From Syncephalis fuscata S228 (Eukaryota; Fungi; Zoopagomycota): a stretch of 64,000 nucleotides of DNA. The stretch spans positions 186,001-250,000 of the forward strand of contig JAHLTZ010000013.1 in NCBI GenBank assembly GCA_025786725.1, read 5' to 3'. Shown piece after piece: positions 14,239 to 49,735 of this stretch. Within the stretch, counting starts at the first letter, position 1. Each line of letters begins with the position of its first letter. The position numbers and the translations under genes were made by a program. The notes under the pieces are model-generated. The model saw nothing but the letters and a program-made list of their open reading frames with translations. It was not told the DNA's origin and searched no databases.

Positions 14239-14239
14239 A

Positions 14240-18937: not shown

Positions 18938-18945
18938 AAGTTAAC

Positions 18946-18963: not shown

Positions 18964-18964
18964 A

Positions 18965-19228: not shown

Positions 19229-19230
19229 AA

Positions 19231-23280: not shown

Positions 23281-23328
23281 TAATAGTAATACGACAAGTG
23301 GTAAGAAATATTTAGTTCCAGATAACAT
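23281..23328 (-). pseudogene. First 16 codons of a secreted pseudokinase-family paralogue, cut by the gypsy LTR
   Basis: MLSGTKYFLPLVVLLL versus the neighbour's MLSGTKCFLPILVLLS. Upstream 23329-~23600 aligns with 25271-~25550. Confidence 0.8.
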
Positions 23329-24113
23329 TATAAATTCTTGTCTAATGCTTTTTTTGTAGTTTCGTAATATTGTAGTTGCAATAATAAAAATAATAGGCAT
23401 AAAGTGAGTTGTGAGAGATAAAGAAATAAAAAGTAACAAATTACTCGGCTATTTATAGCAAATAGTAGTATATAGTAATAGTGCACGCTTTGCTGTTTAA
23501 ACAAAAAAATGTATTTTAACAATGGGCAGCATGGAAATAAAACAATCTAATTAAACGACAGCTCAAAATGGAAATTAGTAATTATTTATGTTAATTAAAA
23601 TACCGTCTTTTATACAAATTAGCTATTGATTTGCCACGTTGATGACATAGAATAAATATGGCAACAGTGATGTGGTGTAGTTGGAATAGAATAATTAACA
23701 GACGATTCAAATGTAGCTGAAATGTATGTATAACATTTCTTTCTAAACTGTAGAATAGCTACGTCATTATACCAACTTGGGATAGAATAAAATGGCGGTT
23801 GTTAAGAAATTATGATATGCAATAAAAATATCGTGTTTTATATTAACAAAGTTATGAAATTAAATATAAAAAAGAAAATTTTTAAAGCACTAGTTTACGG
23901 TTACATCTTTAGTATGAATATGAAATAAAACTAAAAAATATTTAGTCAAATGCATAATCTACATTGATTCAAGTCTTTAACAATAATAAATCACAGAGTA
24001 ACCAAAGTATGTTATAGTTTATTACTTTAGCTACACTACTGCTGCGTGTGGCGATGAAAATAATTGTGCAAAAATAAATTAATATATCTGCAACAAATTC
24101 AGTTATACACTGT

Positions 24114-25270
24114 TTAGTTAGTAGGATCATTGCTTAGTCTTCGGGGATAAGGCGGTGGGAGCTCATCATTGTTACTTGATAGATTCGGTTGATGATTAAT
24201 AGCAGGTGTACGATTGTTTAAACGATTATTAGAATGCGGGTTATATTGTGGTGGAGGTTGATAGCGAGGTGCATTAGTTATCGGTATTAATAAATCCTGG
24301 TAGTTTTCTTTAATATATTTTAATGCTACATCGTATTCCTCAGGATATATGAGTTCTGCATAAATAAATGATAAACCGATAAATAATAAATCATTTGCCT
24401 TTTTTATATCCGCTTCATTCATCACTGTATGAGAAGAAGAAGAAGCAATACCATTGATGGGGCTCATATATTTATTAGAGCCAAATACTATGCTATCTCT
24501 AGTGATGCATGCATCTAATGATTATATAAGTATAAGCAGAGACAATTAAATATCTAACTTACTATCAATATTGCCACCAATCAACCATCCTTTTGCCTTC
24601 ATCTCACGTATAACTATTTAATTGATTATTAGCATAAGATTATTGCAATTAATATACACTCACTTTTTATAAGATCCGGAAACTTAAATTTGTGCGCTAC
24701 TTGTGCTCTATGTGCTTCTTCCAAATAATCACGTATAGTTTTATTGCACTCTGGTTCAACAACCATGAAGCAATAATCGCCGCTTGGTGAAAAAGACTTT
24801 TTAATAACAGAATAAAAAGGATGTGGCAGTGTGTTTGTTGCATACATGTCGTAATCAGCAGTATATATGTCCTATTAACAAGATTGTTATGTTTAAAGTT
24901 TAGAATACAAGTGGATGTACATACATTGTATAATCTAAATGGAAAATAAGTAGTTTCTTTTTTTCCACATATAACTTTGGCGTTGAGTTTACGATTTCCC
25001 GCTGTATCATATTTTGCATTCACAACATACGCGCCACCTTGTTCTATTGCGTTTTCGCTGATCGTAAGGCCTTTGATCTTGAATGCATCATGTTGACCTA
25101 ACCCGTATTTAAAAATAGCATCCATTATAACAATAATGGTTAGTATTGCATTCTGAGGGGGTTCATTATGCTGTTACTTTTGTACCAAAAAAACCTGGTG
25201 ATGCCAGAGCATTTTGGCTAACTGACAGCAGCACCAGTATTGGTAAAAAACACTTGGTTCCAGATAGCAT
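24114..25270 (-). CDS. Secreted degenerate kinase-fold protein (family member 1), 5 exons; intron-1 acceptor appears damaged
   Basis: Signal peptide, then LNAKVICG...YCFMVVEPECNKTIRDYL...IIREMKAKGWLIGGNIDNACI. Same exon structure as 48700-49735. Confidence 0.65.
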
Positions 25271-27104
25271 CGTCTTGTTCTTATCTAATATTTATGTTTC
25301 CGTAATCTCGTAAATATTGTTGTTGCAACAATAAGAATCAGTAGGCGCAAAGTGAGTTGTATAAGAGATAAAGATATAAAAAGTGGCAAATGTTTGAGTA
25401 TTTATACCAAATTGCAGTATGTGACAATCAATGCAGGATTTATTGTTTGAACAAAAAAACATGTATTTTTGATAATGATCAGCATGGAAGTAAAACAAAA
25501 TAATTGAATAATAGTACAAAATGGAAATTAATCATTATTCATGGTAATGAGGATGCTGTTTTAGATTTGGATGCTGCTTTTTACTCAAATTGGTAGTTAA
25601 CTTGTCGCATTGATGGATTAGTACGATATAGTGAAACAATTTCAAGTATTCAAAAAGAATAGGTGGGGCAGTGCTGAACAATCGAGCCGTTTATTTAAAT
25701 ATCTATTTTATGGTTTTGGTTCTAGAACATTAGTACTAATCATTCACATGCAACGTTATTCCAGTTGTATCGATTCTACTACTTTATGAGATAATGCTTA
25801 TTATATAACTATTTTTTACTTTTATGGATTCTAATTACAAAGTTTTATTTGTATGTTTTTAGTTTATTGTTATGCATATTGTTGTAGATTACATTTATCA
25901 AATTGTTCTAAAACATTGTCAAACGTCTAGTGGATTAGCGAGATTAGCGGAAAATCCTGGGCACAACTGAAACACTTATAATGGTCTAGCTAGTTAGCCT
26001 TGCTATTTGGTTTATTTGACAAAACACCTAATGGCAATTTGGATAATCCACCAGTTATGTTTTAATTATTCCATGACGGTAACTAAATATCAAAATACAC
26101 GAGCTGTTATTAAATCTGCTTAATTTATAAAACAATCTAGTAGCAATATAAACAAAGAGCTTTTAAAATATCGTCATAATTTATTAATATACCCTATAAC
26201 AATTGTGTGACATATGTTTACCTATCAAACTAGTCAATAGCTTCGTGAATTTAATCAAATGATCCTGCATGATCACCTAATTTTAGACATAGAGCGGAAA
26301 GATAGCCACATCAGGCGGAGCTTCAATCGGTGTATTGTCGTCATTTTATCCAATCTTTTCCATGTGCTATTTCACTCTTTATCTCTTTCGCTTTGACTGT
26401 CATCACTTCATCCGACTGTTGAAAAAGACGATAGTGTAGCTGTTTATAAGCTATTGTTACTCTAGCACTATTCTTACAGCTGCATCTTGTAGTTATTCTG
26501 TTGTATCTCGTTAGTAGCCTTTATTACCGCCGTACATTTGAACCAGCAAGTTTGCGACGCCACATCTACTTCATGTGATTAGTGTATCGCGTATCTGTAC
26601 TTCTACATTGCGTCTCGACTCTATATCTCCATCCATATACCTATATCCACTTGTCAACCAAACAACACCCGACTATCGCTTAGTCAACTTTGTCATCTTA
26701 GAAGGCCCGTATCTATTTGCCGTTATCTATTCACAGCTTTCTTACGGCAATTGATACCTCACGTGCTTGCTGTTACGACCACCTATTTGTCTATCTATCT
26801 ATCTATCTATCTATCATTTTGTTTACTGCGCTTTTTGTTTATCTCGACTCGTTTATTTGTCGGCAATATTCACATTGTACAGTTGGCGTGTTATTTCTTA
26901 AATCAATCCAATATTCGTTATATCTACAACGTGGTTGGATACGGCAACAATACGTTGACTGTACAAACATTAGCATTCTATAGCTATTTAATTAGCTCAC
27001 TGGATTTGGCGTAATTTTATCTACTCTGTTGTTTATCGGTGTCTATTTAGACACCTAGCAATTAACAACAACAACAATCATATCAGTATCTATAGTTTAT
27101 TGTT

Positions 27105-29105
27105 ATGTATTCTGGTACACGAGGGCGGCAAAATCCGCCGCCTACTATGTTCTATTATCAAAGTAACTTATCCTTTTCAAACGTCCACGATACCTACAAC
27201 AATGATAATGTGGATACACCGCACTGGGATGATGTCTTTACATTTCGACGCCACTCCAGCCGTGCTTGGTCAGTCATCACCGATAATGATGCAGAAGAAA
27301 TAACGACATTATTGGGCAATCCAATACGTGGTCGATTAAAGAGAAAACTAGTTGAATGGTGTAATCGTATGTTAACACGCAATATATTACTTATTGTAGT
27401 GCCTACACTTGCAGTGAGTACTTTATAATATTAATAGAACTGTTTATTAATTATCAATATTTAGATTCTAGCCTGGTGTACAATTCCAATTCCATATGAA
27501 TTAATTGAAAGTAATGTTCCAAAACCGGCACCGGCACCGGCACCAATAGAACATAATGAAACACCATTTAAATCAATGGCTACATCACAACCATCATTTA
27601 CAAATAATCAAGCTCAGCTCAAATGGTCAAAACATTCCGATTTACCATTAAATGTCGCACCAGTTCAAGTGAATAATCAAGTCGATAACAGTGAAACTAG
27701 ATATAACATTTTTACATCTGTTATGTCTAATCACTCAAAAGATAGTATAAAACAACGACAACAATCAACGAACACTATGGATGACAGTATTAATCAATCA
27801 TCTCCACTTAACGTTGATCGATCAACAACGACAGCCACCATCATTTCATCCAGTAATAATAGTAACAATAGTATAGCCGCACCTCATAGTTTAGAATTTG
27901 GAAAACATGAATATGAAGAACATCCACCTATTGCACTAGTTAATTTTTGGTGGTTTCTTTTTGTCTACTATGGCATTTATAATATTATCGCCTTATGGCT
28001 TTTAACTCGTATATTTCAAATCTATTCACTTAACTGGTGGGCAACAGGCTGGAGCAGTAAATCGGCCGGTGCAGCTTGTTGGCTCTGCTCAATGGTCGGT
28101 GGAGCGTTTATTCACTTATTTCTACCACATCTTGAACGCTACACCATTACATGGGTTCTACTTACCTTTCTAATGCTGACTATTCCTCTTTTATCGGCAT
28201 TTGCCGTTATTCGCGGTGAAAATCGCAATGTATACCGACATTCACTTACACTGACCCAGCAAACATTTATGACAACCGATAATATAGGACCACGCATTCC
28301 AGCTTCCTATTTCCGTTTCTTATGGTTCTGTCTTGTTCTAGTCATGATGTGGGCCACTACAGTAGCCGGTGGTTTCTATGCCTGGAGCTATTTATCTTCA
28401 TTGCCACACACCGGCATAGAGGCGTTTATCTACGTCTACTCTTGGGTGGGCATTGTTTACGCTATCGATTTTGTATGTGAAACGATTGTTGAAGAAAAGA
28501 TTCGCTCCCATCCACTTTGTACGGTATTCCGTCTCTATTTCTATCTGCTATATTTCATCTTTTATCGCAATCTATTTGCTCGACTTCGTAATCTTGAACA
28601 ATTTGTCTTAATTCAAGCAGCTTCATCGATTTGGGTCATGATATTCTATCCACTGCGTATGACCCGTACCACGCACCGTTTACTTCAACGATGGTTTGGC
28701 GTGACCCGCGACTACGACGATTACCAGAAGATGCTGGGCCAGCTATTTTATACACGTACCATAGCGGAGAATGTAACCATGCTTGGCTTTCTATGCTGGA
28801 TGAATGCCATTCGAGCCAGTAGCAATTTCCCCATCTATCCATACTACCAATTCAATGGTTATGAAGGTGATCCGTATACCTATGAAAGAACTATGATCTG
28901 TTCTATAGGCGTATGGGTATCGGAATTAGTGACCGCCTATGTGACGCGTGGTCTATTCAAAGCCTATTTCCGACACAGTATTACACGTGAGGCAGTGATG
29001 GATATGCAACGATATCCGGATACAGTATTAACATTAATACTTGTGGCAATTCATGTCATGCAAAGTATGTTATTAGCATTATTCCAACTGAATTTTAAAC
29101 ATTAA
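27105..29105 (+). CDS. Multi-pass membrane protein of unknown function
   Basis: Exon 27105-27413 splices in frame (GT-AG) to 27465-29105. Many hydrophobic helices, e.g. VNFWWFLFVYYGIYN and YFRFLWFC. Confidence 0.8.
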
Positions 29106-29200
29106 ATTAATTATTTTGTCAATTGGATTAAATAATTAATGGATAATTTATATGACAAATAAAATAGTGTCGATATTTATTACAATACCAACCATTATCA

Positions 29201-30428
29201 TTACTCATCGTGTTTATGTGAGTGACGGCCCTTGCGACGTCTGCGTACTTTTTTATGTTTTTCATCGTTATGTTCGTCGTGTTCTCCTTCTTCTCCTTCC
29301 TCTTCTTCGGTGCCACTGTCTTCAGAGTAATGTAATAAAGCGGTCAATTCCATTTCTTTTTTATCGCTATTTGTTCGTTTAGTCGGTTTTAGAACGAGAA
29401 ATGAATAACGACGCCATAATTGAGCCGATGCAAATAAAAGACCAGCTAAACACTTGGCCTCTCGAGGATCAAGTACCAAAAAGCCATCTGTAGGCGATCC
29501 AATAAGTGATGGTGATAAGCGGGCCAGTATAGCATCGGCATAACTAATTTTGTCTGGTGTATTAAGTGTGGTCATGGCATAGATCAGTGTAGTGGAAAGA
29601 CTAACACGTAAATCGTAGTGTTCTTCTTTAAACGCCGCCGGTGTACGTAGACCCCAATCAGCCGCCGTTAGATTAAAGGCATCTATTAATAACATGTAGT
29701 TATTTAATTGGTTATTTATTTAGCTATTTAGTGATCATTAATTGACTTACCGGTAATAATACCGCCACCACAGCCGGCAAGTGTACCACAAAGTAACTGA
29801 GCAATTAAGCTATTCTGTAGTGCAGGCATAGCACGTATTGATTCAATGGCAAAACCTGCTTGTGCATTAGCACGAGTTAAACCATCGGCCAGTAAAAGAA
29901 TGGGACGAATATAGGGTTCAATGGCATCGAGTAGCCGGAATGCAATATCACCGGGTGCACGAAACATGGCCAAGTAAACAATTCTATTATTATTAATAAT
30001 CCAGTAGTTATTATTACAATTATACATTATTAACATGTCTCCTTTACTCTCTCTCCTTGCGCTCTCCTTTAATTGAAAAGTGTATTGACTTACGCATAGG
30101 TCGGTAGTGTGGTGTTTGAAGAGAGCCAGCTTGGTGGTAGACCCATAAGTACAGCGGCTGATGTAGAACCACCCAATGCCATGGCCATTACAACAAAAAG
30201 GCCCTGAACAAGTGGTGGACGTGGTCCAGACATTGTACGAAGACGTGCTCGATAATCGAGTGTCACTTTAATTGCATGAAGTGTTGCAAGAATAGGGAGT
30301 GGTAGCAATGGCGACCATGTTTCTCGCTGAAGCGGGTCAAGTAGATTGGTTAGAAAACCCAGCAGGTTACTATGTTCAGCCACGACAAGGGTCGGCGGTG
30401 GTTGTTCCTCTTTAAAAGACGACGCCAT
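29201..30428 (-). CDS. TRIC/TMEM38-like trimeric intracellular cation channel, 3 exons
   Basis: Two Gly-rich repeats (ALGGSTSAAVLMGLPPSW and CGTLAGCGGGII) and an acidic/basic tail. Family assignment is by motif recognition only. Confidence 0.62.
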
Positions 30429-30788
30429 ATTGAAACGCAAGTAGAAGAATAAACAAGTATAATCAAATTGTAATGAACAATAGAAAGAAGTAAAGGGGCG
30501 GTATTGGTTAAAGCATACGTCACAGTCTAAAAGTGACCTTGATACTTATAGCTAAATTAACACTTTTTAAAGTAGTTATAATGATATACTAATACGGATA
30601 AGTAGGGGCAAATGGTAGGATAATCAAAATTATGACACTGTGCAGTTAATAGCGTTTTAATAGGATTCCACTGTCATTGACTTGAATTATTGTGGATTAA
30701 ACGTTTACTTGACATTAGATTATTCTATTATTGGTTTATGTTGAATCTGTTGCTGTAATCCATGAATTAATTTTTAAGATTTCTGCTC

Positions 30789-31354
30789 ATATCTTTATTG
30801 CTAAAATATTTTAACATATGCTATGATTTGTATAAGCAATACATTAACGACATAATACCAATAAACAATATTATACAATCATCATATTCATATCGCTTAT
30901 TCTATCTATCACGATAATGTCAATTTGTATAAATGATTGAGTGTATTAAAGTACACAGTAGTCTTTAGCAATCAGTCTGTTCCAAACAGTCATAAGATTG
31001 CAGCTAATTGCAATGTATATCATTAAAAGCTGTGTTTAAATTAGTATCAACAAACATGCATACTCAGTTCGCCGCGTTTACGAATAAATCCATTATTTTC
31101 TTTTGGTATTGGAGTTTGAAATTAAGGACCACACAATGGAATTGCTATAATGAACTATGTTCTTCTCATCATGTTGTCAATATATATACATATATATAAA
31201 TGACAATGCAACTCTAAACATTTGTATTTCAAATTCCGTATTTGAATAACGGGGTTATTACTTGCTGTTTATTTCCATGCGCTCTTCCGTGTTTCTTACT
31301 CTGAAGTAGCATTCCATATTCGTCGTCTCATAGTAAATACATCGACTATTGCAT
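30789..31354 (+). repeat. ~570-bp non-coding duplication, copy 1
   Basis: Near-identical direct repeat of 39274-39852. Confidence 0.93.
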
Positions 31355-31480
31355 GCTCTATTTTGCTATAAATACTCATTTTAACATATTTATTTGTTAA
31401 TCATCCCATCATATTTTTTCCTTACGTAATAAACTCATAAAAGTACAGCTTTTTATTGACGACTAGGCCTTGACATAGCC

Positions 31481-32504
31481 ATGTTTACGATGAAATTCAT
31501 TCTTATATTACTGCTCTAGCTTATGCTAGTATGGTTACTCAAGCCACGCCTGCCGATGGCGCACCAAATCAGCCCAGCCTCGGTGGCAAGTATCTATCCC
31601 AAGTCACTCGTGCCATTTACTAATGTTACTATTTATATAGAATTATAAAAACCAATCAAGACTATGTAAAAAGCTTATTTGGCCTACATAGTATTCATTT
31701 ACCGGCACGCCAAACGAATCTAATGGCATATACTATACCAAAGCAACGCAAAATAAGCAGCCTATTACACTTGCATGTGGACTAAATTCAAATCCCAAAA
31801 GTCATGCTCTTAAAGTATATCAGGTGGTTCTATATAACAATATATGCAATAACTAACAAGTATCGCTATCAATAGGATTTAATGGAAACTTACAAACCGT
31901 TTGATGAACGAAACCCTCCGGTTGCTGTGCCTACAGGAAAGATTATGATCCCAGGAAATACATGCTATGTTCTACAAGGCCAATGTAAAAAAAGATATAA
32001 GGATTTTGCTCAAGTATTTAGTGGGTATGTCAACAATGTTAATTGCGCATAAGAAATATTGTTCTAACCTAAATTAGTCGTGATGATGTGGAAAAAGTAC
32101 AAATTTTGTGGATAAATATTGGAAGTGGTACGAGTTTTTAGTGCTTATATACTATATGTTAATCTATTATTAGGTCTAAAAGCTTTAAAAGAATTGGGAT
32201 GGTATGCCCACATGAATTTTGAAGGTAAGCATGGTGTTTATCACTGATGTTTATACTAACAATATTGCTAGATATTTGCATTTATGAGGACAAATATGAA
32301 TTTGACCCATACTTCATTAACCTCAGTAAGGTTATTCCAGTAGGACAAGGAAGAGTTATCGTTGATAAACTTGAGGGAACAACTAAAATTGATGAAATGA
32401 ATGAGTTTGCTCTAAATGCTAGTCTTCGTCTTGTTAGTGACAATGTAAAAGCTGAGATAGCGATAAAAATGCGTAATTCTTTTAATGAAGGAATGTATTG
32501 GTAA
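31481..32504 (+). CDS. Secreted degenerate kinase-fold protein (family member 2, more distant), with at least 2 apparent 1-nt deletions
   Basis: Reconstructed signal peptide (SYITALAYASMVTQATP), then ITLACG...TCYVLQGQCKKRYKDF...GLKALKELGWYAHMNFEDICI...PYFINLSKV. Confidence 0.6.
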
Positions 32505-33250
32505 AATCTTTTTTATTATTTTGGCAAACCAGATTTTAAAGACCGGAATTTAGGACCAATAGACAGCTTTACAGATGCAATCAGTACTATAGCATTGGGC
32601 CCAGAGAATAAATAACAAGTCTTACAAATAACCAGTGATTACTTAAATAAAGCCATGCCATGTTGCGGTTTACTTATTACAACTGTGCACTATTTCTAAT
32701 ATCGATTATTTGTTTATTAAATAATAACATTTATTGCTATTATAAATGTTATTTAGTATAATTAAATAACATAGTATTTTATAAAAATAATATGTATAGT
32801 AGTCTACTATATGCATTTTGTATATTTTAATATATTTAATTCCTTTCTCTATCCTTCAACGTGTAAATGTCGTCAATAGCGCATAATGATCATGGCTGAC
32901 AAATGCCAACTTTAATATGCGGATTTCGCTTATTAATGCTAGGTAAACAAATAGCTACATTTTTAAATCACGTCTTTTCTATTTATTATTCGTAGTAAAT
33001 ATAATGTAACTATAGTTAATAAATAATGAATAGTATGATTTGATCAATTACAACATACATTAAATTAAACACTTTTAATAGTAATTTAATAATAGATAAA
33101 TAAAGATAATGATTAATTTGTTAATTAGCTAGTTAGTTAACAAATCGATTATCTTTATGTATTGTTATTGTTAGAATAAAACAAAATAAGAATTTAAAAG
33201 ATTCACTTTGAATAAATGTCTTTTGTATAGATAATCATAAAAAATAGTAT

Positions 33251-34692: not shown

Positions 34693-34954
34693 GATCTGTA
34701 CGGCTTAATAGAACGGAAAGAAAAGAAATGACACGAAAAAAGAACAGACTCTTTATTTGTTTACTTTTCAGTCGTTACTTTCTAGTATTTCTACAGTTTG
34801 AATTGTCAATATAATTAATATTTATATTATTGACTCTATAATCAATTAAATATCTATTGTTTCTTATATAATTTATATGACCAACTACTGTTAAACACAC
34901 ACACTATAACATAGCGAGTATTCACTTTATAATCAACTGATTAGTATTACTATT

Positions 34955-35949: not shown

Positions 35950-36152
35950 TAATAAAATAAATGTTATAAATGTTAATAAAGTGTTATATATTATTAATAT
36001 TCAAACACTAATTTGTAAATGGATTTATAGTCAATATTTTAATTACAGTTGTTTCTTTCTTGAATTCTTGTTAAATAATAACAATTCTTTGTTATTTGTT
36101 ATTATACTCGATCAACGATAGAACAACAGAATAATTCCGTATAAATACTAGA

Positions 36153-38974
36153 ATGGCGCAACCACCAGGTAATCATCAGTATAGGAAGCAGGGTAGACCT
36201 ACAGGCAATATACCTATGATATCGCGTCCAGGTAGTGGATATGGTATACAGCCACCACCACCACCACCACCTATGGCTACTATACCACCTCATCCTTCAG
36301 GATGGACACAGCATCCAGGGCCTACGGGACAGCCTTATTACTATAATACATTTACGCGACAAAGTACATGGAAGCGTCCACCAGAACTGGACCAGCCATT
36401 ACCAATGCGTATGCCACCACCACCACCATCCACACGCGTATCCTATGGCATCCAGACAGTACACACAGCCTGCAACAACAATGACAATGTCGGGACCGCC
36501 TACCACCAACACCACTACTAATACTGGTATGGATAAAACAAATAAATCACAATCCAGTAAAGAAAAGAAAAAAGATAAAGCAAAGCGGATGTAAGTAGCC
36601 AGTTTATCTATGTTTAATTGACACGCAATAATCTTGTAATATCGTGTATTTATAGGACACTCATTCCTGGTACACATTGGAAACTGGTAAAGACTGCAGA
36701 GGGAAGAGAGTTTTACTATGACACAGAAACAAAGAAATCAGTATGGACCATACCGGAAGAAATTGTCGATGCTGTTAATGCATTAAAAACGGTCGAACAA
36801 GAATCGAATAAGCGCAAGGCAGAAGAAATGATTGCAAATGATACAGCTAAACCAATCGATGAGACAGTATCAACAGCTAGTTCATACGAAGATAAAGCGG
36901 AAGAGTCAACGAAACGAATAAGGGCTGAATCGATTGAAACGGGTATACAAGTGGATACGGCAACTAAATCACCAGAAATGGCCACAGAGTATGTAAAGCA
37001 TTTAATTAATTGTACACTCAGTATAAGTTAATGAATGAATGAATATGTAATCACCTATATTAATATTGATTAGAATGACTGAGGAGGACATTCTCTTTCA
37101 ACTTCAGGCAATGCAACAAGAGGAGGAACAACAGTATCAACAACAAACTCAAATACCATCAATAGCACCTGAAGCTGCTCTATCTTACGAGGAGCGGGTT
37201 GTTTTATTTAAGGTAATAAGATAGTTGCCTATAGATGTATAGAAAATGATTAATGTACAACGATTGACTAGACTTTGCTTGAAGAATCTAATGTTTCAGC
37301 ATTTTCATTATGGGAGAAAGAGCTGCCTAAAATTGCGGCAGATCCACGCTATTTACGCAAGTATTTGGATTATTTTAAAAGATTATCATACTAATAGTAT
37401 ATCAAATATATTCAGTCATTCCGTCAGTGAAGCAAAGAAAGGAGATATTTGATGATTATTGCAAACACTTGGTGAATAAGCCCAAAGGAGCAGTAGTGGG
37501 TAGAAAGAAGGTAAGATTCATGTATAGAGGATTTGGCATAAAGCTAATAGAAAGATTTAGACGGCAAAAGAAAAGTATCAAGGATTACTTGAACAACAAG
37601 TGACCGAAACTACACGATGGCTAGACTTTAGTCATAAGCATAAACGGGACTCTCGGTTCAATGCGGTGGACACAAAAGAGCGAATGCGTTTGTTTGATAA
37701 CTATGTTAAAGCATTAAAGGAGGATAAACAGCAAAGTAAGTATAAGAGCGGATAAAAAACAGTTAATTAATTTAGTATGCTAGTTAAAGATAGTGAGGGC
37801 AATAAAGTTAAAGACGACTACCGGCAACTGTTACGTGAGATGCGACGCATAGATTCAGAGTCAAGTTGGCGCAGTGTAAGTAATAACCATGTAAATTAAA
37901 TAGCATACAATTTAGATATTATGGCAATTAGGTAAAGCGAATGATTGAAGACGATGCTCGATATCACGCAGTGGGATCGGCAGATGATCAAGAAGATTGG
38001 TTTTACGAGTATCGTAGAGAACTGGAGAAGCATGAAGAAGAACGTCGACAGAAACGGGAAAAGGAAGAAAAGGAACGAGAACGGCGTCGAAAGTAAGCTA
38101 AATAAAATTGATATATCAGTGCATTTATAGTGTTTGTAGAGAAGAGGCGAGTTTACGGGAAAGAGAGCGGCAAGTTCGACGAGAACGTGCTCAGCGAGAT
38201 CGAGAAGCAAAAAACCAACGGGCCGTGGTGGATAAAGAAGATGCTACTCGCTCGTGCCAAACGTTATTTATTGATAAAATTCGAGATCATACGGTAAGTA
38301 GACTGGATATAAATAAATAAATACATAAAGTAATCGATTAATGGTAGATGACATGGTCAGAGGCACAGCCTGAATTGCATCAAGATAAGCGATTTGAATT
38401 GTGTGCTGAGATGCTTGGTTTACGTGAAATGGAGACATTGTATGAAGTACATATTGATACCATTTACAATGCACGAGAAAAAACATTTTTTGCACTACTT
38501 GATGAACAAGTACCGTTATCGGTGTCGAATTGGGTCGAGGCTAGCGAGATAGTTGGAGAACAAAAGGCAACGACCCAGCTCAAGCTGACCGATAGTAAAT
38601 TGGCCGATTTATTTACACGCTATCACACAAAACGAATGATGAAGGCTAAACAAGACTTGAATGCACTACTTGAAGAAAGTACATTTATTGAATTTCATGC
38701 CCGTGATGGCACATTAGCTATAAAGGATGTTATGGAGGTGCTTCAGGTAAGCAAACCATCTTAATTTGTAGTTGTTCATTGCTAATCAATGATGATGGTG
38801 TGTGTGGATTAGGAGGATCAACGGTATTTGCAATTAGCATTTATTGCCGAGGAGCGAGACCAGATTGTAGAGCGTTATGTTGAAGATCTTATGGCAAAGG
38901 TGGGCCGTAAACCAGAGGAAAAGACGAGTGATGCCGATGATGATGACGATAATGAAGTGGATGCGGATGCATAA
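36153..38974 (+). CDS. TCERG1/CA150-like WW- and FF-domain splicing/elongation factor, multi-exon
   Basis: WW1 GWTQH...YYYNTFTRQSTWKRP and WW2 WKLVKTAEGREFYYDTETKKSVWTIP. FF repeats (FSLWEKELPKIAADPRY, DSRF, DARY). Frameshift near 36428. Confidence 0.85.
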
Positions 38975-39273
38975 ATAGCTTTATTATTAAATTAGTAGTA
39001 TTTAGTTTACTTTTATTTAAGCTTCGATGATGTTGATACCGAATATTATTAGTGGTTGCCAAAAAGATACAAAGTAACAATAAATTGAATTTGATAAAGT
39101 TAGAATTATAGTAATTATAAATACCATTACACTCGATTGAATCAATACTAATTTAGATAATAATTAGAATTAACTAAGAATATTCATCACAAGATTTGGT
39201 AGTTGTATTAAAATGGCCGTATTTAGATATAATTATAAGCTAAAGTTTCAAGCTCTCTTTTCTCACTGTATCT

Positions 39274-39852
39274 ATATCTTTATCGCTAAATATTTTAACA
39301 TATGCTATGATTTGTATAAGCAATACGTTAACGACATAATACCAATAAACAATATTATACAATCATCATATTCATATCGCTTATTCTATCTATCACGATA
39401 ATGTCAATTTGTATAAATGATTGAGTGTATTAAAGTACACAGTAGTCTTTAGCAATCAGTCTGTTCCAAACAGTCATAAGATTGCAGACTAATTGCAATG
39501 TATATCATTAAAAGCTGTGTTTAAATTAGTATCAACAAACATGCACTACTCAGTTCGCTGCGTTTACGAATAGATCCATTATTTTCTTTTGGTATTGGAG
39601 TTTGAAATTAAGAACCACACAATGGAATTGCTATAATGAACTATGTTCTTCTCATCATGTTGTTCAATATATATACATACATACATATATATAAATGACA
39701 ATGCAACTCTAAAACATTTGTATTTCAAATTCCGTATTTGAATAACGGGGTTATTACTTGCTGTTTATTTCCATGCGCTCTTCCGTGTTTCTTACTCTGA
39801 AGTATGCATTCAATATTCGTCTGTATCATAGTAAATACATAGACTATTGCAT
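39274..39852 (+). repeat. ~570-bp non-coding duplication, copy 2
   Basis: Near-identical direct repeat of 30789-31354. Confidence 0.93.
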
Positions 39853-40685
39853 TGTTGCTATTCTAATATTTTGGACAGGGTCTTGTGTGAAGTGTGACCA
39901 AAAGATATACCATGTAATTGGATCACCAGGTAAAGTCGCATGTGATTGATTGCAAAAATAATATACCTATCGGATATTAGTACCAATTACTAGTAACAAA
40001 TGCCTATTACGACAATATGACGAGTAGCTACTTGTTAGTTGTGAACATATGAGCAGTCACCTGAACTAATATGCTGCGCTAATAATGAAATACTACAAGA
40101 CATTCCAGTTCTATTATTAGTTATGTTTACTATATAATGATAGCTTTATTCAATATCAATAAAGAAATAATCAAGTTTCTAGTCCAATGTTATTTCTACT
40201 TAGTGTCATACAAGTTATTCAGTTTATTATAGTTAAACTGTGGTAATTGATAACCAATAAGGAATAATTTTATTATAAAAGCAATACAACCAAACAACAC
40301 ATTGCATTCTGAGCGTTAAGCTAAGCGTTAATAAGCATCAGAAATTAGCGTTATAGGATAGCGATAGGATAAGGTGTTGCTTGGTCATCTAAGTTGCAAT
40401 TTCTAAAACTAGAAGCGTAACATTACGTTATTTCCTTGTATGCTGTTTATGCTGGAGAAGCTATTTTAATTTATAAAACTCAATGTATTTTTCTTTTAAA
40501 TTTTTCATATCTTTATTAATAAAATACTTTATGTCTGTAGAAAATTTGTTCATTTCATTCCACATGTACCAATAAAACGGCAAAGGCCACATCACAGCCT
40601 AACGCTATTAATAAATCACGTCATTGCGTAATTTATATTAGACAAATACTTTCTGTTCTTACAAAGGCAATGATATCTTTTTCCA

Positions 40686-42273
40686 ATGCCGTTTGAAAAT
40701 AGCAACGCTTCAGCAAAGATATGGGCTATTGTCGAGATTGTCGAGCACATAGCATTATTCAGTGGAAGTCAGGCCACCGCTATCCTGTCATGTACTTGTG
40801 CTCAATTGCGCAGCTCTATAACAAAAAGTGATCGTTTATGGCATGCGTTTTATCAACATGCTTTCTTTTTTTGTAAGGACAATGATGACGGCTGGTTAAG
40901 CTGGCGACTAAATCAGGAATACTCGACTTTGATGCACACGGATTGTGTAAAAGACGAACACACAAAAAACTATAGCTGGTGGCAACGTTACAGCCAACGT
41001 AAAAAACTACATATAATTGGCTTGAGAATAAGCCGACAAAAACGTTCAACATAATCGGTATTAAGCAGGGTTCAAGCCCAATGTTAACATACAATGATTG
41101 TGATATATTAGCCACTTGTCCTGGTTGGATTGCCTTGACTGATCGTTACCAGCACTGGATTTATTTAATTGAGCTTTCGCCAATTCGTTCAGCAATCGTA
41201 CACACACTAACTTATAGTGAGAAGTCATTTACCAAATTAACTGCAGTATTCAGTACTAATCATCAAAAGCCTTTTGACGACAAAGAAAAAAAAGAGTGCA
41301 ATCTATACTTGATTCTGCACATGTTTTTTCCATACAAAGGCATAAGTGAGCTGCAACTATGGAATGTAGGCAATAGGCAACTATCGCAAACAATTCATTA
41401 AAAGGACGTTTAATGGGCAAGATCATTGGCTTATCTCTGCTACAATGTGAGATTGAACGTGGCTGTTTTAGTCCGCCGCCTTATGATAGTTTTATATCTT
41501 TGATTACAAATATCATTCCAACTAAGAATCGTAAAGTGCAATTTATAGACATTCCCAAGAAAAACAAAAGCAGTCGTTGCATTATACAATCAGTATATGA
41601 GGATTTTGTAATTTTATTGCGCTATTCTAATTATTTACCCTCAGACTCGTACGATGTAATCAAAGTGCCAACAAACACGCTATCCGACGAAGTAGCCAAC
41701 AATGAATCACAGCAGATAATAACCCTTAGCTCAAATTGTTTTTCACCTTCTAATGGAATGAGGCAATTATCTTGTAATTTTCATCGATTGGATCAGAATA
41801 GGGCCTTGTTTCATAATCCAATGCAGTTTGTCGGATCCAACGGCAAACAGCAATATACTGATTACATTGCTGTTTTATCAGTGTCGAACGGCTTAGTTTG
41901 GGAAGCTAGTTATCCTGGAGAACGAAGTGAGCGTTTAATTTTTATGCCTGAGCATAATCTATTTGCTATTCTGTATTCTGAATGGCCAATAATTGTGGTT
42001 ATTTCATTATTGGATGGATCAATTAAGCACAAAATTGGCATTGATTTTTCACTTGATAAGTTTAGCAATTTTGAGCGTTGTTTTGATACATTAATCGTTG
42101 GATATTATTTAAAAGCAAGCCAATATTGCATTGTTAATTTAGCAACAGGTCAGCATTCTATTCATTTATTTCCTATATCAAACGTTACAAATTGCAAGCC
42201 TACATTTGGTCATATGCTAATAAGAAATAGTAACGAATTGCAAGCTATAAGTTTTGTTCCTGAACCAATATAA
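40686..42273 (+). CDS. Divergent F-box-like protein with beta-rich C-terminus; split by two 1-nt deletions (~41005, ~41397)
   Basis: IVEIVEHIALF...LSCTCAQLR...DRLWHAFY is F-box-like. Three consecutive ORFs each shift by -1 with no introns. Confidence 0.6.
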
Positions 42274-42525
42274 CTTTTGACGCAATTACAATAGCAATAA
42301 ATAGTATATTTGGACTTTATTACTTTTCCAATGTATCTATAGCAAGAAAATACACATTGTTGAGCGATAATTAAACAGCGAGATTAGAAGAGACAAAATA
42401 CTAATGACATAAATTTAGTTTTTATTTGCATATTCTCAATAAAATAACATACACAATTAGAGTAACAATAAACCAAAGAAAGCTCTATTAAGCGAATAAA
42501 CAAGTGTTTTTATAGATTTAGTTGA

Positions 42526-43472
42526 TTAGATTATTACGGTTTGATTGGGCTTAATATTGGAAGAGAAATGAAATAAATCGTCGACCATTCGTTCGCTAAC
42601 ATCATTAATAGAAAGATTAAGATCCGCCAAAGGATCCACAAATTGGTCGATTGATAGATAATGCCATTTTGTGTAAGTATAGGCTCGCCTACAACATGAG
42701 CATCCTCGACGTGAATATTATCACTATTGCTATTGCTGTTGCTATTATTAGCTTTACCCATACGCGCCACCTGTAGCGACACACCGGCAAGTGTGGGCAC
42801 ATCGTATTGATGATCTAGTTTCATTGAATCTGCTGGAATTTTTGTTGGGACCAAGAGACCAGCCAAAGTAAATCCCATCATAGCTCGATTGAAATAGTTG
42901 GGCCCCAGTAAGAGACGTTGTGCATTGGGCGATAGTCGGTCAAAAGCCACATCAATTGGTGCAAATAACTAAAATAAATATTTACTAATGAAGATGACCG
43001 TATTTTCAAGCGCTTATACGACTTACTGTTAAATTCTGAAAGGATCAACCAATAAATGACTATGTATTCCGAGCAAATTTAGATGCGTGTTCAACTGAGA
43101 GAATTGCGGCTGCTTTGCAATGATTGTACCAATGGTATTGGGCCGAAGTGGTGCTGGCCCATTAGGAAGCGTAGCAAGTGGCGATTTGGGCATCCATTCA
43201 AACACTTTAACAAAAGGCAGGCCAGGCAATGGTCCATTTTGTACAATGGCAGGAAGACCAGGCTTTTGCAGTCTATGTAATCGATGTATGTTCTTGCTTT
43301 TACTCTTTGCTCGAGTCGAATGTCGTTGTTCTACTCCGATTATAGACTTTATCTTTGGCACTATTGATGCTGCAACTAAGCCTGCTTCTATTGTATTAAT
43401 ACCGTAACCAACATTGTGACCAATAATTATTATGGTCGATAATATTGTAATTAGTCTGTGAATTCCACGCAT
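42526..43472 (-). CDS. Secreted/membrane fasciclin (FAS1) domain protein, 2 exons; 1-nt deletion near 42650
   Basis: Hydrophobic N-terminus, FAS1 H1 FAPIDVAFDRL, TLAG, and H2 NGIIY-x-IDQFVDP after frame correction. Confidence 0.75.
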
Positions 43473-43876
43473 TCTCTAGTTATTGTCTAAAGACACATTA
43501 AACATATGTTTACTACTACTAAAGTTGTACAACCTATCTTTTCTTTTGAAAATCGTCAACCGAATACAAAACAACAACAAAGGAACAAGCTTAATTGGTA
43601 CCAAGTTACGGAACTTTTGTTTATAAATATACATTGCATTCATAAGTCCATCCATTGTCATAATAAGCGCGTTACCATGGCGCATTTTATTGTCGACTAT
43701 TTAACAACGCACGTAATATGATATAATATCTATGTCACTTGGCAACTTTATTCAATACATACGATGCTATTCATTAGCAAAATAGTAGCTAGGCTACCTA
43801 TCTGTTCACAATAGCTTCTTTTCTACCAATGATTGTCCATCATTATTGGCACACCTCAATGTATCTGCAGTTCATG

Positions 43877-44512
43877 CTACCTTTGTTTAAATCCTAATAG
43901 TAAACGTGAATAATCAATGAAATTCATTAATTAGCGGATAGCTTACCATATTTCTTCCGTTCATAAAATAGATCGGTCTTTGATGTGCCCAAATTGACAA
44001 CCTTTGGACAGCCATCTCTCTACAAAGCGCAAAAGTGCAAAAAAATAGATAGGCACGTCATGTTGTTAATGCTATGTTCCATATTCTCAATAGGCACAAC
44101 ACCACTACTCTTATCGATAGTCCAATATGCACTATATTGTAGCGTATTCGTTACTATCGCTATTTACTTACATCTTTTTCCAAAACAGTACACTCTTTGC
44201 AGTAGTACGCGTCAGAAATGCCAACACCACCACAGACAACACAGCGTCCCTGGAAAGTGCCGTAGTTACATTCGTCGCAGATGTGGACGAGCGTGCACGG
44301 CCGTACATAAGAGTCGCAGATAACGCATTTGCCATCGCATTTCTCGCATAAACGACCAATAGCTATTATCGTTATCGTTAGTAGGCAAAAATAGAATGCG
44401 ACAACCGCAAAAAGGTATCGTTATAAGCAACATGGCTTATTAAAACAAACGACCACTTACCAATGCCCGGCTGCTTACGGCACATAATAAGATCGGGGTG
44501 ATGACGAGCCAT
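43877..44512 (-). CDS. RDS3: SF3b subunit PHF5A/Rds3; exons 44512-44461, 44362-44172, 44019-43947, 43893-43877
   Basis: Spliced translation [52 protein letters not shown]...[43 protein letters not shown]. Canonical GT-AG introns. Confidence 0.97.
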
Positions 44513-44664
44513 GACAATACAAGCAGATCACTTATACGTACGTAAAAAGTTGCAATAACAAAACGTGCGAATCCGATCTAGAATGCACTAAGCCTATTCA
44601 ATGGTGTGCACTATTTGTCAATAAATCAACTTTTAGTTATTAATCATTATTAATAGACCATAGA

Positions 44665-45042
44665 TTGATCAAAACTATAACCACCAATCATGTCAATTTA
44701 GTGAAGTTTTCCCATTGCCATTGTAAGCCATTGGTAGACGGCAAATTTGTCTGCCGTGACTGCAACGATGCTTCACCGCCTTTTGGTAGCCATGTAACCA
44801 TCAGGTGCATCCTATGCAAGCTTGCATCTTTGCTTCAAAATAGACCAGTAATTAAGACGGATATGATACACGTGCCAGAATATCCTCCGTCGCGTACCAC
44901 AACTTACTACGGCTACTGGTTGGTGGTTAGTTGTTGTTGTCATGCCAACATCCTGATCAGGCTGGAATGGGTTATGCCCCAGACTGCTACTACGCAAACA
45001 AAACCGACTATCCCACGCTCTGCAAGCACTTATAACGAATAA
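44665..45042 (+). CDS. Possible small Cys-rich protein (start uncertain)
   Basis: GC-elevated 125-codon ORF with CHC, CRDC and CILC motifs, divergent from RDS3. No recognisable family. Confidence 0.25.
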   Translation: MIKTITTNHVNLVKFSHCHCKPLVDGKFVCRDCNDASPPFGSHVTIRCILCKLASLLQNRPVIKTDMIHVPEYPPSRTTTYYGYWLVVSCCCHANILIRLEWVMPQTATTQTKPTIPRSASTYNE

Positions 45043-45891
45043 CAATTGGTTATAATGGACATGGTAATTAACGTCGTTTCTCGTATATTAGTTTACGCGG
45101 CACATTCTCCATTTATGCCATAGAAAGGCAGTATACAATTAAATTAGTGCTTTATTCGGTTTATTATTAGCTCTTTTTTATTTTATTTCTATTCTATTTT
45201 TGTTATTTGCCATTGTATCTCACATAGTCGCCGTATTCGGCGCATATTACATTTATATACACACGCACATTGGATATTGTGCATTCGTGTCGTGTTTCTA
45301 AATTGGAGGATTGCCGTCATATCCGAATTTGTACTCAGCTGACTTGTGCGTGTTTGTGTGTTTGCGTGTCTGCATCATCCATCTCATCATCCCCTTTAAA
45401 TACACCGCCTTGTTTGTCCCCCACCCACCAACTGCATTCTTTCTTTATTTTGTCTTCTGGTTTCTTTTATTCACTGTTGGTCATCATGGCTTTCTAAATT
45501 TATTTTGCGCGTATACTTTTTGGCTATTGGAATTATTTTAACAGCAATTAACAGCAATATCTTTGGCTTTTATTGGACAGCAACTTTTATTTTTAGGCTT
45601 TATTTTCTCTGACCTGCACCGCAATTACAATGACTTGGCTACGTCATCCTCGACCTAAAATGGCTTTTCTCTATTCTCAACAATTATTTTGCTTACCGAA
45701 AGAAAAACTTAAAGAACATTAACATCAGTATTAGCTATTCTCTATCGAGTTGAATACTCACATTAATTATTCATTGATTGCTTTAATAATCAATCCAAAT
45801 CCTCTCTCCAGTTTTAAATTTTGCCGTTATTGGTACTTATTGTTTTGAACTATAACTATTTGCTCTATTTGAAATTTAATTGATTATCAAC

Positions 45892-47268
45892 ATGAAAGCT
45901 GCCGTAACATCTTTACAGATGCTGCCATCTAATCTGACGCATCGTCTTACGGCCGCGGCAGTGACACGCATTTCGGTAAGCAATGACAACATAGGCAGTG
46001 TAACCATAAGCCTTTCACTGTTGCCGTTTTTAGTAATCATAACTAATTGTTTATTTATTACTCATTAGCTCAAGGAAATGTTTATGAAGAACCGTGAAAT
46101 ACTGGCAAATCATGATGGGACTGCTCTAGTAACACCGGCCCAGTTCCTTCATCGCGAACTGCCGGTACGTCTGGGACAAAGTGTAGCGTTGTTGGACGCA
46201 ACACTGTCTCATTCTGATACGACACATTCGCGTAGCTCTATACTACGAGCAACAGTGGTAAAACGTGTCATCCACCAGTATGTCAATGATATCAAGTTAT
46301 TGCTCGATACGCCTGTACCAAAGACGGCGGAACAAGCTATTGGATTTACGAGTATTTTGCACAAGATACGAGAAGGCCAGAGACAATCTATATTTACTCT
46401 TGGCGAAGGTGTGAGTCCTTTAGCAAGTCTGGAACACACTGAGGAAACACGTCAAATGCAGCGCTTTCTGGGAAGATTCTTCTCCGCTCACTTGGGCACA
46501 CATATGCTAATTGGTAACCATTTAACATTATGTGAGCATGGACGTACACTTGTGGACACTGTTCGTCCATACGACATTGCCCAACAAGCGATTGAAGATG
46601 CCCGTCGTAGCTGTGCGGTAGTGTATGGCCGACCTGCACCCAATGTCGAGTTTATTGCACCGGAGCCTAGTGTTTCCACCACATATATACCCGAGCATCT
46701 TAGACGTATTCTATACGAAACGGTCACATTTGCTCTGCGTGGAACTATGGAGCACTTTGGTGTGGCAAAGGATGCAACATCTACCTCTAGCACTGTTCCA
46801 TCCGTAAAAGTAGTGATGATCAACGGAGAAGAAGATGTTAGCTTTAAGGTGTCGGATATTGCGGGTGGTACACCAGCTCGTCAAGTTGAACGACTCTGGT
46901 GGTACAATTGGGAGGATGTCATTCGTGCTCATTCTCGTAACGCTGGTCTAACACCAGTGGCTGATCAATCTAGCGAATTCCAATCTGTCTGTCCGTTTGC
47001 CATGCCTACTAATGGCGAGCCAGCGAACCTAACTTGCATGCCAGGCTTTGGCTTTGGACGAGGATTGCCCGTTGCCCGTTTGGCAGCCAGATACTTTGGA
47101 GGCGATCTGGATCTTGTCTCCATGGAAGGCTACGGCACTGATGTCTATGTACATCTAACACGCGCCGATACTTGCCTGGAAAACTTTCCACCAAGTCCCG
47201 AAGTGGCCGATGCTATCGATCGCAACTACTGGATTATTCCACCAGCTGCGGTTGAACTTGAGGCCTAA
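45892..47268 (+). CDS. Second PDK/BCKDK-family protein with degenerate N-box, 2 exons (45892-45975, 46069-47268)
   Basis: AQFLHRELPVRL, YIPEHLRRILYE, GEEDVSFKVSD, GFGRGLPVARLAARYFGGDLDLVSMEGYGTDVYVHL. Confidence 0.9.
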
Positions 47269-47597
47269 ACACTTCAGTCATATCAGTTTCTTTCTCTTCT
47301 TTTCGTTTCGTTTATTGCTTGTTTGCGTGCGTAAAATACACTGCAGGTTTTAATTGCTTACCAATTAATTGACATTGTTTGGTATATATTTTGAATGTTT
47401 GTTTTTTCTATATACAAAAAACAAGCATGAATATCAATTTAATAAATCTATCAGATTTGTTGCAGTGTAATATATAAGCTACATGGCACACGGTTTAAGA
47501 CATACGTTTTAGTTTAATTAATCTTATTGTCAATTTCAAATAAAATTGGCCTTCATTATCCATAGCAACCTGCTAACTTTCTAGTGCTTTTATCAAG

Positions 47598-47894
47598 ATG
47601 AATACACGCAATCCATCCCATATCTATCGCTTTTTAGAAGATAAAGGACAATTCACTAATAGTGATACGATAAACGATGCAAAAGCACCACCAGCTTGTA
47701 CTGTAGCAATTCGACAAAACGAAAAGACTCGTTGTATTTGTCAACTGGATCACGATGACCTGTGTACCTGTACAACATTTGGTCTTTGTGCATGCGATCG
47801 GACTAGTTGCTATTGCGAGGATTGTTCTCCAGTACAAGCGAACTTGAACCAGCATACTTTGAAAGGAAACTCGTCGAAATCGAAAATTGAATAA
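47598..47894 (+). CDS. Small Cys-cluster protein (metallothionein-like spacing)
   Basis: ATG-initiated 98 aa containing CIC-x7-CTC-x5-CAC-x4-CYCEDC. Confidence 0.4.
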   Translation: MNTRNPSHIYRFLEDKGQFTNSDTINDAKAPPACTVAIRQNEKTRCICQLDHDDLCTCTTFGLCACDRTSCYCEDCSPVQANLNQHTLKGNSSKSKIE

Positions 47895-48699
47895 ATTGTA
47901 TAGTTATTGTCATGCAGTACTATGCTAAAAATGAACTATGAGCATTACTGCAAAAGTGAAACTAACTTTGATAATGTATAAATATCAATACAACAAATTT
48001 ATTACAGGTTCATTTCAAAAATACCAGTATATCAACATTTATAAGACCTAAATATAAATGATACGTCTAATGTTTACTACACGTTCAGTAATTCAAGTAT
48101 AATTAGAGATTATCTGAATTATATGATTAAAATTTTACGATTAAAATTTATTAAAGGCAATAAGTAACTATATATTGTATAATTTTAGCTACAAAAAATA
48201 TTAAATTGATAAAGCAATGAAAATCTACATGCAAGCGATTAGCACTAATACTTAGGACTAAATCAACAAAATAAAATTCTAACTAGACGGCACAATTGTT
48301 TACCATTGCCCCAGTTATTTCTTTTTAGATACATAACATCTTGTTACCATATTTGTTCTAAGCCACTAACATAACAGGTCAACTAGTTGTATATAAAGCG
48401 GTATCTAGATCTAAAACGGCACTTTCAATTAGCTTGCACGATTATTAGTCCCCGTTTTGAGCTGTAATTCGATTAGAATGTTTTACCCCCATGCCGGTCA
48501 TTATTGCAATACAAGGCCTATCGCTTAAACAATAAAACGTGCATTAACTACTATGTATTGCAATTGCTATAAATACTTGAATAATTGCCACTTTTGTTTC
48601 TATATCACGCACACGACTCATTTTACAACTTCTTATTTTTATTGCTATAACTACAGTATCTCACAAAACTACGGGATATACGCATTAAACAAGAATCCA

Positions 48700-49735
48700 A
48701 TGATGCTATCCAAAACCAACTATCTTTTATCTCTACTGGTGCTGCTATCGGTCGGTCAAAGTATAGCAGCATTGCCAAACAATCTTGATGCAAAAGGTAA
48801 CAACATAATGGATTTGTAATACGATGGTAATACTAACATAACAATACTAGATTTTGTCTCTGAGTATCAACTAGGCCAACCTGGAGCATTTGGTATCAAG
48901 AGCTTAGTTATTAATAAGGATGCAGTGAAAAAAGAAGGCGCATATGTTATGGAAGGAAAATATATTGTAGATGGATCTTATCGGCTCAATGCTAGAGTTA
49001 TATGCAGAAATGAGCCAACTAAATATTTGCCATTCAGATTCTACCAGGTATGCATATCCGCTATTACTTTAAATCTTAGTCATAATAACTTTGCTGATAG
49101 GAAATGTATTCTGGGGATTTTAACATGTTTGAATCAAATTCTCTGCAAAGCCCCTTTTATTCTGTCATCAAAAAATTTACTTTAGATAAAGGCTATCTTT
49201 GCTACATGACTGCTAATTCAATGTGCAAGAAAACCGTTCAGTCCTATCGTACCGATAAATACGTTGAACCACAAGTAGCAAAGTCTAGACTTTTGAATTT
49301 TATAAGCTGCAAGTACATATCAGTTACAGTATTTGTTTTGCTAATATCCAATTGAATAGTGATTAAAGACATGAAGGCAAAAGGGTGGTTAATTATTTCT
49401 GCCGTCAGTTCCGGTAAGTTGAATAGTTAACTTTTGCACTTGTAACTATGCTTATATGATTATCAGATGGATGCATTGATGATAATCGCATAACATTTTC
49501 TTCCATCGATCGCATGAGTCCTATGGATACAGCATTTCCAACTATTGATGGGCGTGTAAATGACAATCAAATCATAATGGAGAATGAGAGACTATGGATG
49601 TGGCTGGCCTATTTTTATCTTAAAACTGAACCTAGTTTGAGATACTTGCAAGCATTAAAAGACGTTAAAGATAAATACAAGGATTTAGCAATATCAATAA
49701 CTAATCCACCATTCAATCAAAATTCACGACCGTAA
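48700..49735 (+). CDS. Secreted degenerate kinase-fold protein (family member 3), 5 exons, apparently intact
   Basis: Signal peptide MMLSKTNYLLSLLVLLSVGQSIAALP, then LNARVICR...YLCYMTANSMCKKTVQSY...IKDMKAKGWLIISAVSSDGCI. GC-AG third intron at 49309. Confidence 0.75.

Follow-up and report, generated by a model that had tools for sequence, protein, structure and literature searches.

The stretch of the Syncephalis fuscata genome analysed here (64,000 nucleotides, C35:186001-250000 of a 29.4-Mb assembly in 371 contigs; hereafter the window) contains three genes, A, B and C, and a gene stub, which probably belong to one multigene family. The best overall explanation of this family, to which we give a probability of about 0.6, is that of secreted proteins with a dead kinase fold that act non-enzymatically. 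In each intact member, the structure models predict a compact domain of ~220 residues with the bilobal protein-kinase fold, in which no charged residue appears to be conserved at a catalytic position. The combination of a signal peptide, conserved Cys residues and a catalytically empty scaffold suggests that these are secreted binding proteins, a function that we consider somewhat favoured by the data, and the species-restricted expansion of the family and its turnover beside transposons fit this reading too. The proteins would enter the secretory pathway, disulfides formed from the conserved Cys would stabilise them, and they would then leave the parasite and bind a partner via the dead-kinase scaffold, the genes evolving by duplication, gene conversion and loss beside transposons. 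Both the disulfides and the binding function are putative, being read from sequence patterns, and delivery into a host fungus is speculative.

The organism is the one named by database matches, a zoopagomycete parasite of other fungi, which bears out the "probable mycoparasite" of an original prediction made from the letters of the window. Note that the genome searches reported below were made exon by exon, never with joined spliced models, and that full-length work used public database proteins only: P0005 (gene A) and P0006 (gene C) were modelled, the other members serving as alignment rows. Genes A and C and the stub belong to the subfamily that we call A-type, and gene B to a divergent one, the B-type.

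Signal peptides and PPxY tails

Gene A provides the evidence for transcription. Two contigs of run X1, whose RNA label is a guess, match the gene: one spans 25318-25178 and resumes at 25097 (to 25023), skipping 80 bases with GT..AG ends, and the other covers 24871-24692, its start coinciding exactly with the exon 3 boundary. As there is hardly another explanation for an excised GT-AG intron, the first contig derives from a spliced transcript; it joins the signal-peptide exon to exon 2, and gene A is thus a real gene, as proposed originally, with five exons (intron phases 1/0/1/1), a coding part running from 25270 to 24114 (-) and a 5' untranslated region visible up to 25318. The acceptor equivalent to the one used by its paralogues (~25127) is AA, not AG, in gene A, so the next AG is used: the transcript joins the conserved donor to the first AG past the branch point (25099-25098), with the loss of ~9 codons. 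We considered that the missing AG acceptor makes gene A a pseudogene, and rejected this because the X1 contig shows the downstream AG in use. At the end of exon 1, in an A-run (25178-25181), the X1 contig holds one A more than the assembly. This extra A puts the signal-peptide exon in frame with exon 2, and without it the frame is closed; the discrepancy may be a homopolymer assembly error or a strain difference. The public protein P0005 begins at an internal Met, so that the signal-peptide exon is missing from the public annotation.

A cleavable signal-peptide pattern, with n, h and c regions and small residues at -3/-1, is found in most of the B-type loci and in 15 of the 18 A-type loci, whose N-termini resemble that of gene A and reach a maximal 9-residue Kyte-Doolittle hydropathy of 2.6-3.9. 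The signal peptides of the B-type loci, called by eye and hydropathy, are their own. These N-termini suggest that the family proteins are secreted.

Behind the domain, the A-type proteins end in tails that carry one to three PPxY or LPxY motifs at two sites, one immediately following the domain and one close to the C-terminus. In a count over 16 tails, which as paralogues are not independent, we found 20 [PL]PxY motifs against 1.6 +/- 1.2 expected, none of 5000 composition-preserving shuffles reaching 20. The rest of the tails is barely alignable, and the persistence of the motif amid this divergence argues for constraint; in the model the tails have a low predicted local distance difference test score (pLDDT). 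The motifs are absent in the L014 clade and in the B-type, and were lost from gene C. PPxY motifs are ligands of the WW domains of NEDD4/Rsp5 ligases, which are cytosolic, and for this reason they are the sole feature of the family that argues for a cytosolic destination. A complex prediction that paired the gene A tail with WW domain 1 of the Rsp5-like ligase encoded by the parasite itself, used in place of the host enzyme, scored 0.03, which speaks neither for nor against binding.

The gene for this Rsp5-like ligase (three WW domains and HECT) was found twice with identical match scores, at G000:C79:87297-89534 and G000:C241:5096-7333, which may be an assembly duplicate, as also for C78/C168 and C52/C90. 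One HECT ligase, being devoid of WW domains, was set aside in this search.

Signal peptides and conserved Cys suit any extracellular or luminal protein, and the family may be secreted and work at the surface of the parasite itself or within its secretory pathway, as cell-wall, adhesion, haustorium, spore-coat or endoplasmic reticulum/Golgi binding proteins that are not delivered to a host. We regard this as a serious, if minority, possibility: no translocation motif was identified and the B-type members have no PY tails, but the conservation of PPxY in otherwise divergent tails is hard to explain without contact with the cytosol, and a rapid birth-and-death turnover near transposons is more typical of interaction genes. 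At the other end of the range, the A-type proteins could be effectors translocated into the cytoplasm of a mucoralean host, where the domain would bind some host protein, standing in for a host kinase as mimic or decoy, while the PPxY tail recruits a host Rsp5/NEDD4-type ubiquitin ligase to that protein. This we hold to be improbable; if true, the A-type would represent a parasite-encoded degradation or trafficking adaptor, and the first fungal family of secreted pseudokinase effectors, a case of convergence with the apicomplexan rhoptry pseudokinases.

A predicted kinase fold without a catalytic site

The scaffold through which the secreted proteins would bind their partners was modelled twice with AlphaFold2, on gene C (10-row alignment, mean pLDDT 72, predicted template modelling score (pTM) 0.69) and on the domain of gene A (25-row alignment, mean pLDDT 84.5, pTM 0.82). 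Both models consist of three long N-terminal strands, a helix, two strands, a short and a long helix, a strand pair, a long helix and a last helix, which is the order beta1-3, alphaC, beta4-5, alphaD, alphaE, beta7-8, alphaF of protein kinases. Only one helix follows alphaF, in line with the short C-terminal lobe predicted originally.

Foldseek searches against the PDB returned at least 500 matches at E <= 0.001, and all 50 rows listed for each search are protein kinases, the best E-values for the two models being 5e-6 and 1.5e-6 with a probability of 1.00. An aligner independent of Foldseek, run over 48,161 chains, gave a top 50 that is kinase-like throughout (YabT, CurKC, RIO1, RIO2, SNF1, NleH1 and OspG among them), with Z 6.4-8.6 over 147-210 residues; at rank 50 of the two lists Z was still 6.4 and 7.1, against the 4-5 that the tool reports as typical for unmatched models. 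In the ESM Atlas, the only clusters matched were Pkinase, Kdo, RIO and lanthipeptide-kinase clusters, at template modelling scores (TM) of 0.41-0.46, and the sole named language-model neighbours were Pkinase/RIO1/APH clusters. The secondary-structure order and three search engines thus agree on a bilobal protein kinase-like architecture. The kinase fold had been predicted from motifs, and this prediction could have failed; the two models returned kinase-like structures only, and the motif map on which it was based fits their secondary structure as well as the hhalign register, with beta3 (Cys for Lys), beta5 plus hinge, an alphaE ending in K..GW and the DFG place. The hhalign match to genuine S. 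fuscata kinases aligns the beta4/beta5-hinge-alphaD-alphaE part of the family with the same stretch of these kinases. The likeness to kinases is structural only, the sequence searches given below falling short of significance.

Several points weigh against a secreted dead-kinase-fold family. The TM-scores are only 0.33-0.46, with a root-mean-square deviation of 5-12 A and Z about 8, which means either that the fold is strongly remodelled or its lobes are arranged differently, or that the models are imperfect. Both models were built from alignments composed solely of paralogues from a single species. Neither exon pieces nor eight full-length members have a Pfam match at E <= 10, a sequence-profile search of the PDB gave no real match (one chance hit, E 0.72), and hhalign against five genuine S. 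fuscata kinases reaches no better than E 0.094, short of significance. On the side of secretion and expression, the signal-peptide calls were made solely by eye and from hydropathy, the expression evidence consists of two contigs of low depth (3-4) and concerns gene A alone, and the assembly sequence leaves the observed splice of this gene out of frame by one A.

We find it rather unlikely that the kinase-like models are artefacts of the shallow, paralogue-only alignments and that the true fold is different. The tool itself calls TM 0.33-0.46 and Z 7-8.6 "middling", and sequence support stays below significance, but the two models come from different alignments and different proteins and agree in the order of their secondary structures, the second with a pTM of 0.82, and three search engines give kinases exclusively, without the mixed lists expected from chance.

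The dead-kinase reading is carried further by the conservation table of the family, in which the equivalents of HRD, DFG and the Gly loop are absent, as had been predicted, together with that of the beta3 Lys. Columns conserved at >=70% are mostly aromatic and aliphatic. Four Cys are conserved (53, 101, 109 and 156; gene A numbering throughout), and conserved polar columns are few (D73, K91/K92, K142/K144, N194 and D227). When catalytic places are mapped from secondary structure and the hhalign register, not by residue-level superposition, the beta3 Lys place falls on the invariant Cys of a V-I-C motif, hydrophobic or variable residues take the position of HRD, and an F-x-S-like sequence that of DFG, with no Asp or Lys conserved at these places; the beta1-beta2 loop varies in length and sequence and shows no Gly motif (GxGxxG). 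A D or N often stands at the place of the catalytic-loop Asn. This residue, the conserved polar columns and the kinase-like fold of the models would all suit an atypical active kinase or nucleotide-using enzyme with relocated catalytic residues, as in WNK, FAM20 or SelO, which we nonetheless judge quite unlikely, since the polar columns all fall outside the Lys, HRD and DFG places, the first of which is an invariant Cys, and the beta1-beta2 loop has no Gly motif. If the models are right, the kinase fold can be reduced to ~220 residues with all catalytic residues lost, and was apparently re-stabilised by Cys for extracellular life.

Family size and gene turnover

The family is much larger than the four loci counted originally, amounting to ~40 loci genome-wide. 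A single exon of gene A finds 18 loci, and a family profile gives 64 exon matches in ~24 A-type loci; the B-type has at least 16 loci, most of them in a cluster on contig C112. In this cluster, at least 11 B-type genes lie within G000:C112:70000-278000, several with in-frame stops or missing exons (L024, L025, L032). Among 5.8 billion sequences the family profile matched 9 proteins, each of them named as an S. fuscata "hypothetical protein". Against 1.84 billion unnamed representative proteins, an exon-5 profile gave 15 matches at E <= 0.001, 10 of which we read as family; seven of these are tied to S. fuscata, P0003, P0004 and P0006-P0009 by name and P0005 by its match to gene A, while the other 5 of the 15 are long proteins matching in multiple stretches, taken for low-complexity matches. 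From these sequence searches, the family appears so far in S. fuscata only. The public models P0003, P0008, P0013 and P0016 are mis-spliced or fused (retained intron, skipped exons, N-terminal extension), and with members that are "hypothetical" and in several cases mis-modelled, the family is invisible to routine secretome pipelines.

The motif series said to be shared by the three genes holds firmly for A and C, with per-exon tblastn E-values of 1e-11 to 1e-17, far beyond chance, and ~470 nt of conserved upstream sequence. It is weak for A and B, whose exon-level hhalign matches have E 0.023, 0.081 and 0.14, although every best match is collinear (the beta2-beta3 piece, the Cys-x7-Cys piece and the piece starting D-x-C-I), and an A-type profile finds no B-type exons in the genome at E <= 0.01. 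Read from the sequence, the two types have two phase-1 intron positions in common, a few residues before K..GW and directly before [DN]-x-C-I; all four conserved Cys of the A-type have B-type counterparts, and loci of the two types adjoin on two contigs. On these grounds A-type and B-type would, with good likelihood, form one superfamily.

The window itself holds one expressed copy (A), one tail-less (C), one dead (B) and one stump (Table 1), a mix accounted for by duplication, gene conversion and loss near transposons. It is AT-rich and eukaryotic (GC 32-44%), with introns ~50 nt long and TACTAAC-type branch sites. All four features of the original "three complete genes and a stub" are found where they had been placed, but gene B proves to be a pseudogene, and the stub retains no more than 26 coding nt.

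Gene C is intact with a tail truncated by a frameshift. It is the annotated P0006, 273 residues with a signal peptide. Past its stop, likeness to the paralogue tails, including an LPxY-like site, runs on in another frame. A frameshift was also considered at intron 3 and was rejected, as the comparison of ten paralogues identifies a GC-AG intron: the donor GCAAGT is present in 5 of the 10 aligned paralogues, gene C included (L002, L004, L005, L007, L009), and GT in the other five, the non-canonical donor having been inherited within one clade.

The start reading frame of gene B meets a stop after 12 codons. Aligned with its nearest copies L020 and L021, to which it is 92% identical over 1.4 kb including introns and flanks, gene B lacks 1, 2 and 1 nt at three sites of exon 1 and a single nt at each of two sites of exon 2, most of these deletions lying outside homopolymers; given at least five frameshifting indels, it is a pseudogene. 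L020 and L021 carry frameshifts of their own, so that all three copies are dead. A block of 100 nt in exon 2 of gene B (31724-31823) is 100% identical in the three copies, as against 92% overall, which could be gene conversion or chance.

As for the stub, which had been counted as a signal-peptide member of the family at 23281-23328, almost nothing of it is left. At 23302 the sequence of the window parts from contigs of a very abundant repeat; with the repeat boundary there, only 23303-23328 derives from the gene and the remaining apparent open reading frame is the end of a long terminal repeat (LTR) element. The ~270 nt upstream of the stub's coding part are 76% identical to the region upstream of gene A (309 nt aligned), the likeness ending at 23299-23302.

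The LTR retrotransposon nest itself occupies 10597-23302 of the window, with long intact open reading frames at 19620-23147 (1175 residues), 14310-17909 and 10872-14021. Its end, 23241-23302, is carried by an X1 contig of depth ~2590, so that the element is either abundant or highly transcribed.

At the scale of the family, 21 A-type loci are near-complete: 9 have fully clean models, 5 more are probably intact with a divergent exon 4, and the others lost start, junction or frame. Nei-Gojobori ratios of nonsynonymous to synonymous divergence (dN/dS) range over 0.17-0.80 in 15 pairs, mostly 0.3-0.6, which indicates constraint on copies that nonetheless evolve fast. Mosaic pairs also occur, with identical exons 2-3 and an exon 5 of synonymous divergence 0.41, which points to gene conversion. 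That the family is decaying, transposon-associated junk devoid of present function, as gene B and its two nearest copies all being broken, defects in roughly a third to half of the A-type loci and the LTR insertion into the stub might suggest, is very unlikely given a dN/dS below 1 in every pair, the conservation of Cys, aromatic residues and PY motifs, the many clean models with conserved intron phases, and the spliced transcript of gene A.

Table 1. Family features in the window (positions in the window; exon lists in order of transcription)
Feature	Position	Strand	Basis or remark
Gene A (A-type; P0005, BDF19DRAFT hypothetical protein)	24114..25318	-	Hand model, P0005 and X1 contigs
Gene A exons	25270-25178, 25097-24925, 24871-24664, 24613-24563, 24514-24114 (stop included)	-	Hand model; exons 2-5 match P0005
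Signal-peptide coding part of gene A	25202..25270	-	Lys-containing n-region, Leu/Val-rich core of ~11 residues, small residues at -3/-1 before Pro
Intron 1 of gene A, as removed in cDNA-type contig	25098..25177	-	Joint 25178/25097, GT..AG ends
Disordered Pro/Asn-rich tail of gene A, two PPxY motifs (24243-24254, 24147-24158)	24147..24254	-	Motif count
Gene C (A-type; P0006, which starts at the second ATG, 48703)	48700..49735	+	P0006 shows the same splice pattern
Gene C exons	48700-48796, 48851-49047, 49101-49308, 49360-49413, 49467-49735	+	Sequence and P0006
Intron 3 of gene C (GC-AG type, phase 1, donor GCAAGT)	49309..49359	+	Paralogue comparison; P0006 reads through the junction
Truncated tail of gene C	49706..49863	+	Stop 49733-49735; second tblastn high-scoring segment pair 49735-49863
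Gene B, pseudogene of the divergent B-subfamily, six-exon plan	31481..32504	+	5' part broken, exons 3-6 still open
Copy of the gene B upstream region (30789-31354)	39274..39852	+	~580 bp, 96% identical, no B-type exons behind
Stub of an A-type gene: upstream region and initial 26 coding nt (23328-23303)	23303..23595	-	LTR retrotransposon cuts off the rest

Outside the family, two WW-domain matches lie in adjacent open reading frames of the window (36294-36380 and 36675-36755, +, within 36153-37031); this WW-domain gene, 4 kb from the gene B pseudogene, is probably unrelated to it.

Comparison with known systems

To our knowledge, almost nothing is known on host manipulation by zoopagomycete mycoparasites, and our literature search found no effector family described for them and nothing on the S. 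fuscata family. A secreted, expanded and fast-evolving pseudokinase family would therefore give a concrete set of effector candidates.

The original prediction had pointed to the Toxoplasma ROPK pseudokinases, and the S. fuscata family does resemble the ROP5/ROP2 clade in combining a signal peptide with a kinase fold of degenerate catalytic motifs, and in forming an expanded multigene family in a parasite, polymorphic and acting by binding in the case of ROP5/ROP2. Unlike ROPK proteins, the S. fuscata family has no Pfam kinase-like match at E <= 10 and no arginine-rich amphipathic N-terminal helices, only ~10-20 residues lying between signal peptide and beta1; the family also has a far smaller domain whose C-terminal lobe is cut short, four conserved Cys and PY tails, the organism is a fungus, and delivery to a host is, for S. 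fuscata, conjectural. ROP5 is thus best taken as an analogy, not a relationship.

In size and in the truncated C-terminal lobe, the family comes close to RIO1/RIO2, NleH1 and OspG, which are among the best structural matches (RIO1 Z 8.5, RIO2 Z 8.4, NleH1 Z 7.2 with 147 of 160 residues aligned, OspG Z 6.8). These proteins, however, retain their catalytic Lys, Asp and Asn as well as ATP binding, are found in the cytosol or are injected through a type III secretion system, and have neither a eukaryotic signal peptide nor the conserved Cys set. The kinases of the secretory pathway (FAM20C/Fjx1, PKDCC/VLK, FAM69) share with the family a kinase-like fold, a passage through the secretory pathway and stabilisation by disulfides, putative in S. 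fuscata, but they are active and larger, with family-specific insertions and Pfam families of their own that find no match here. The PPxY/LPxY motifs of the A-type tails recall the "late-domain" and adaptor motifs that recruit NEDD4/Rsp5 HECT ligases; such motifs are normally cytosolic, whereas the A-type proteins carry signal peptides, and the A-type sites are candidate ligands only.

Overall, the models place the family within the protein-kinase-like fold and no more narrowly, since by sequence it is no member of ROPK, RIO, NleH or OspG. If its members are indeed secreted pseudokinases, they would represent a striking convergence with both the ROP5-type pseudokinases of apicomplexans and the minimal kinase-fold effectors of bacteria.

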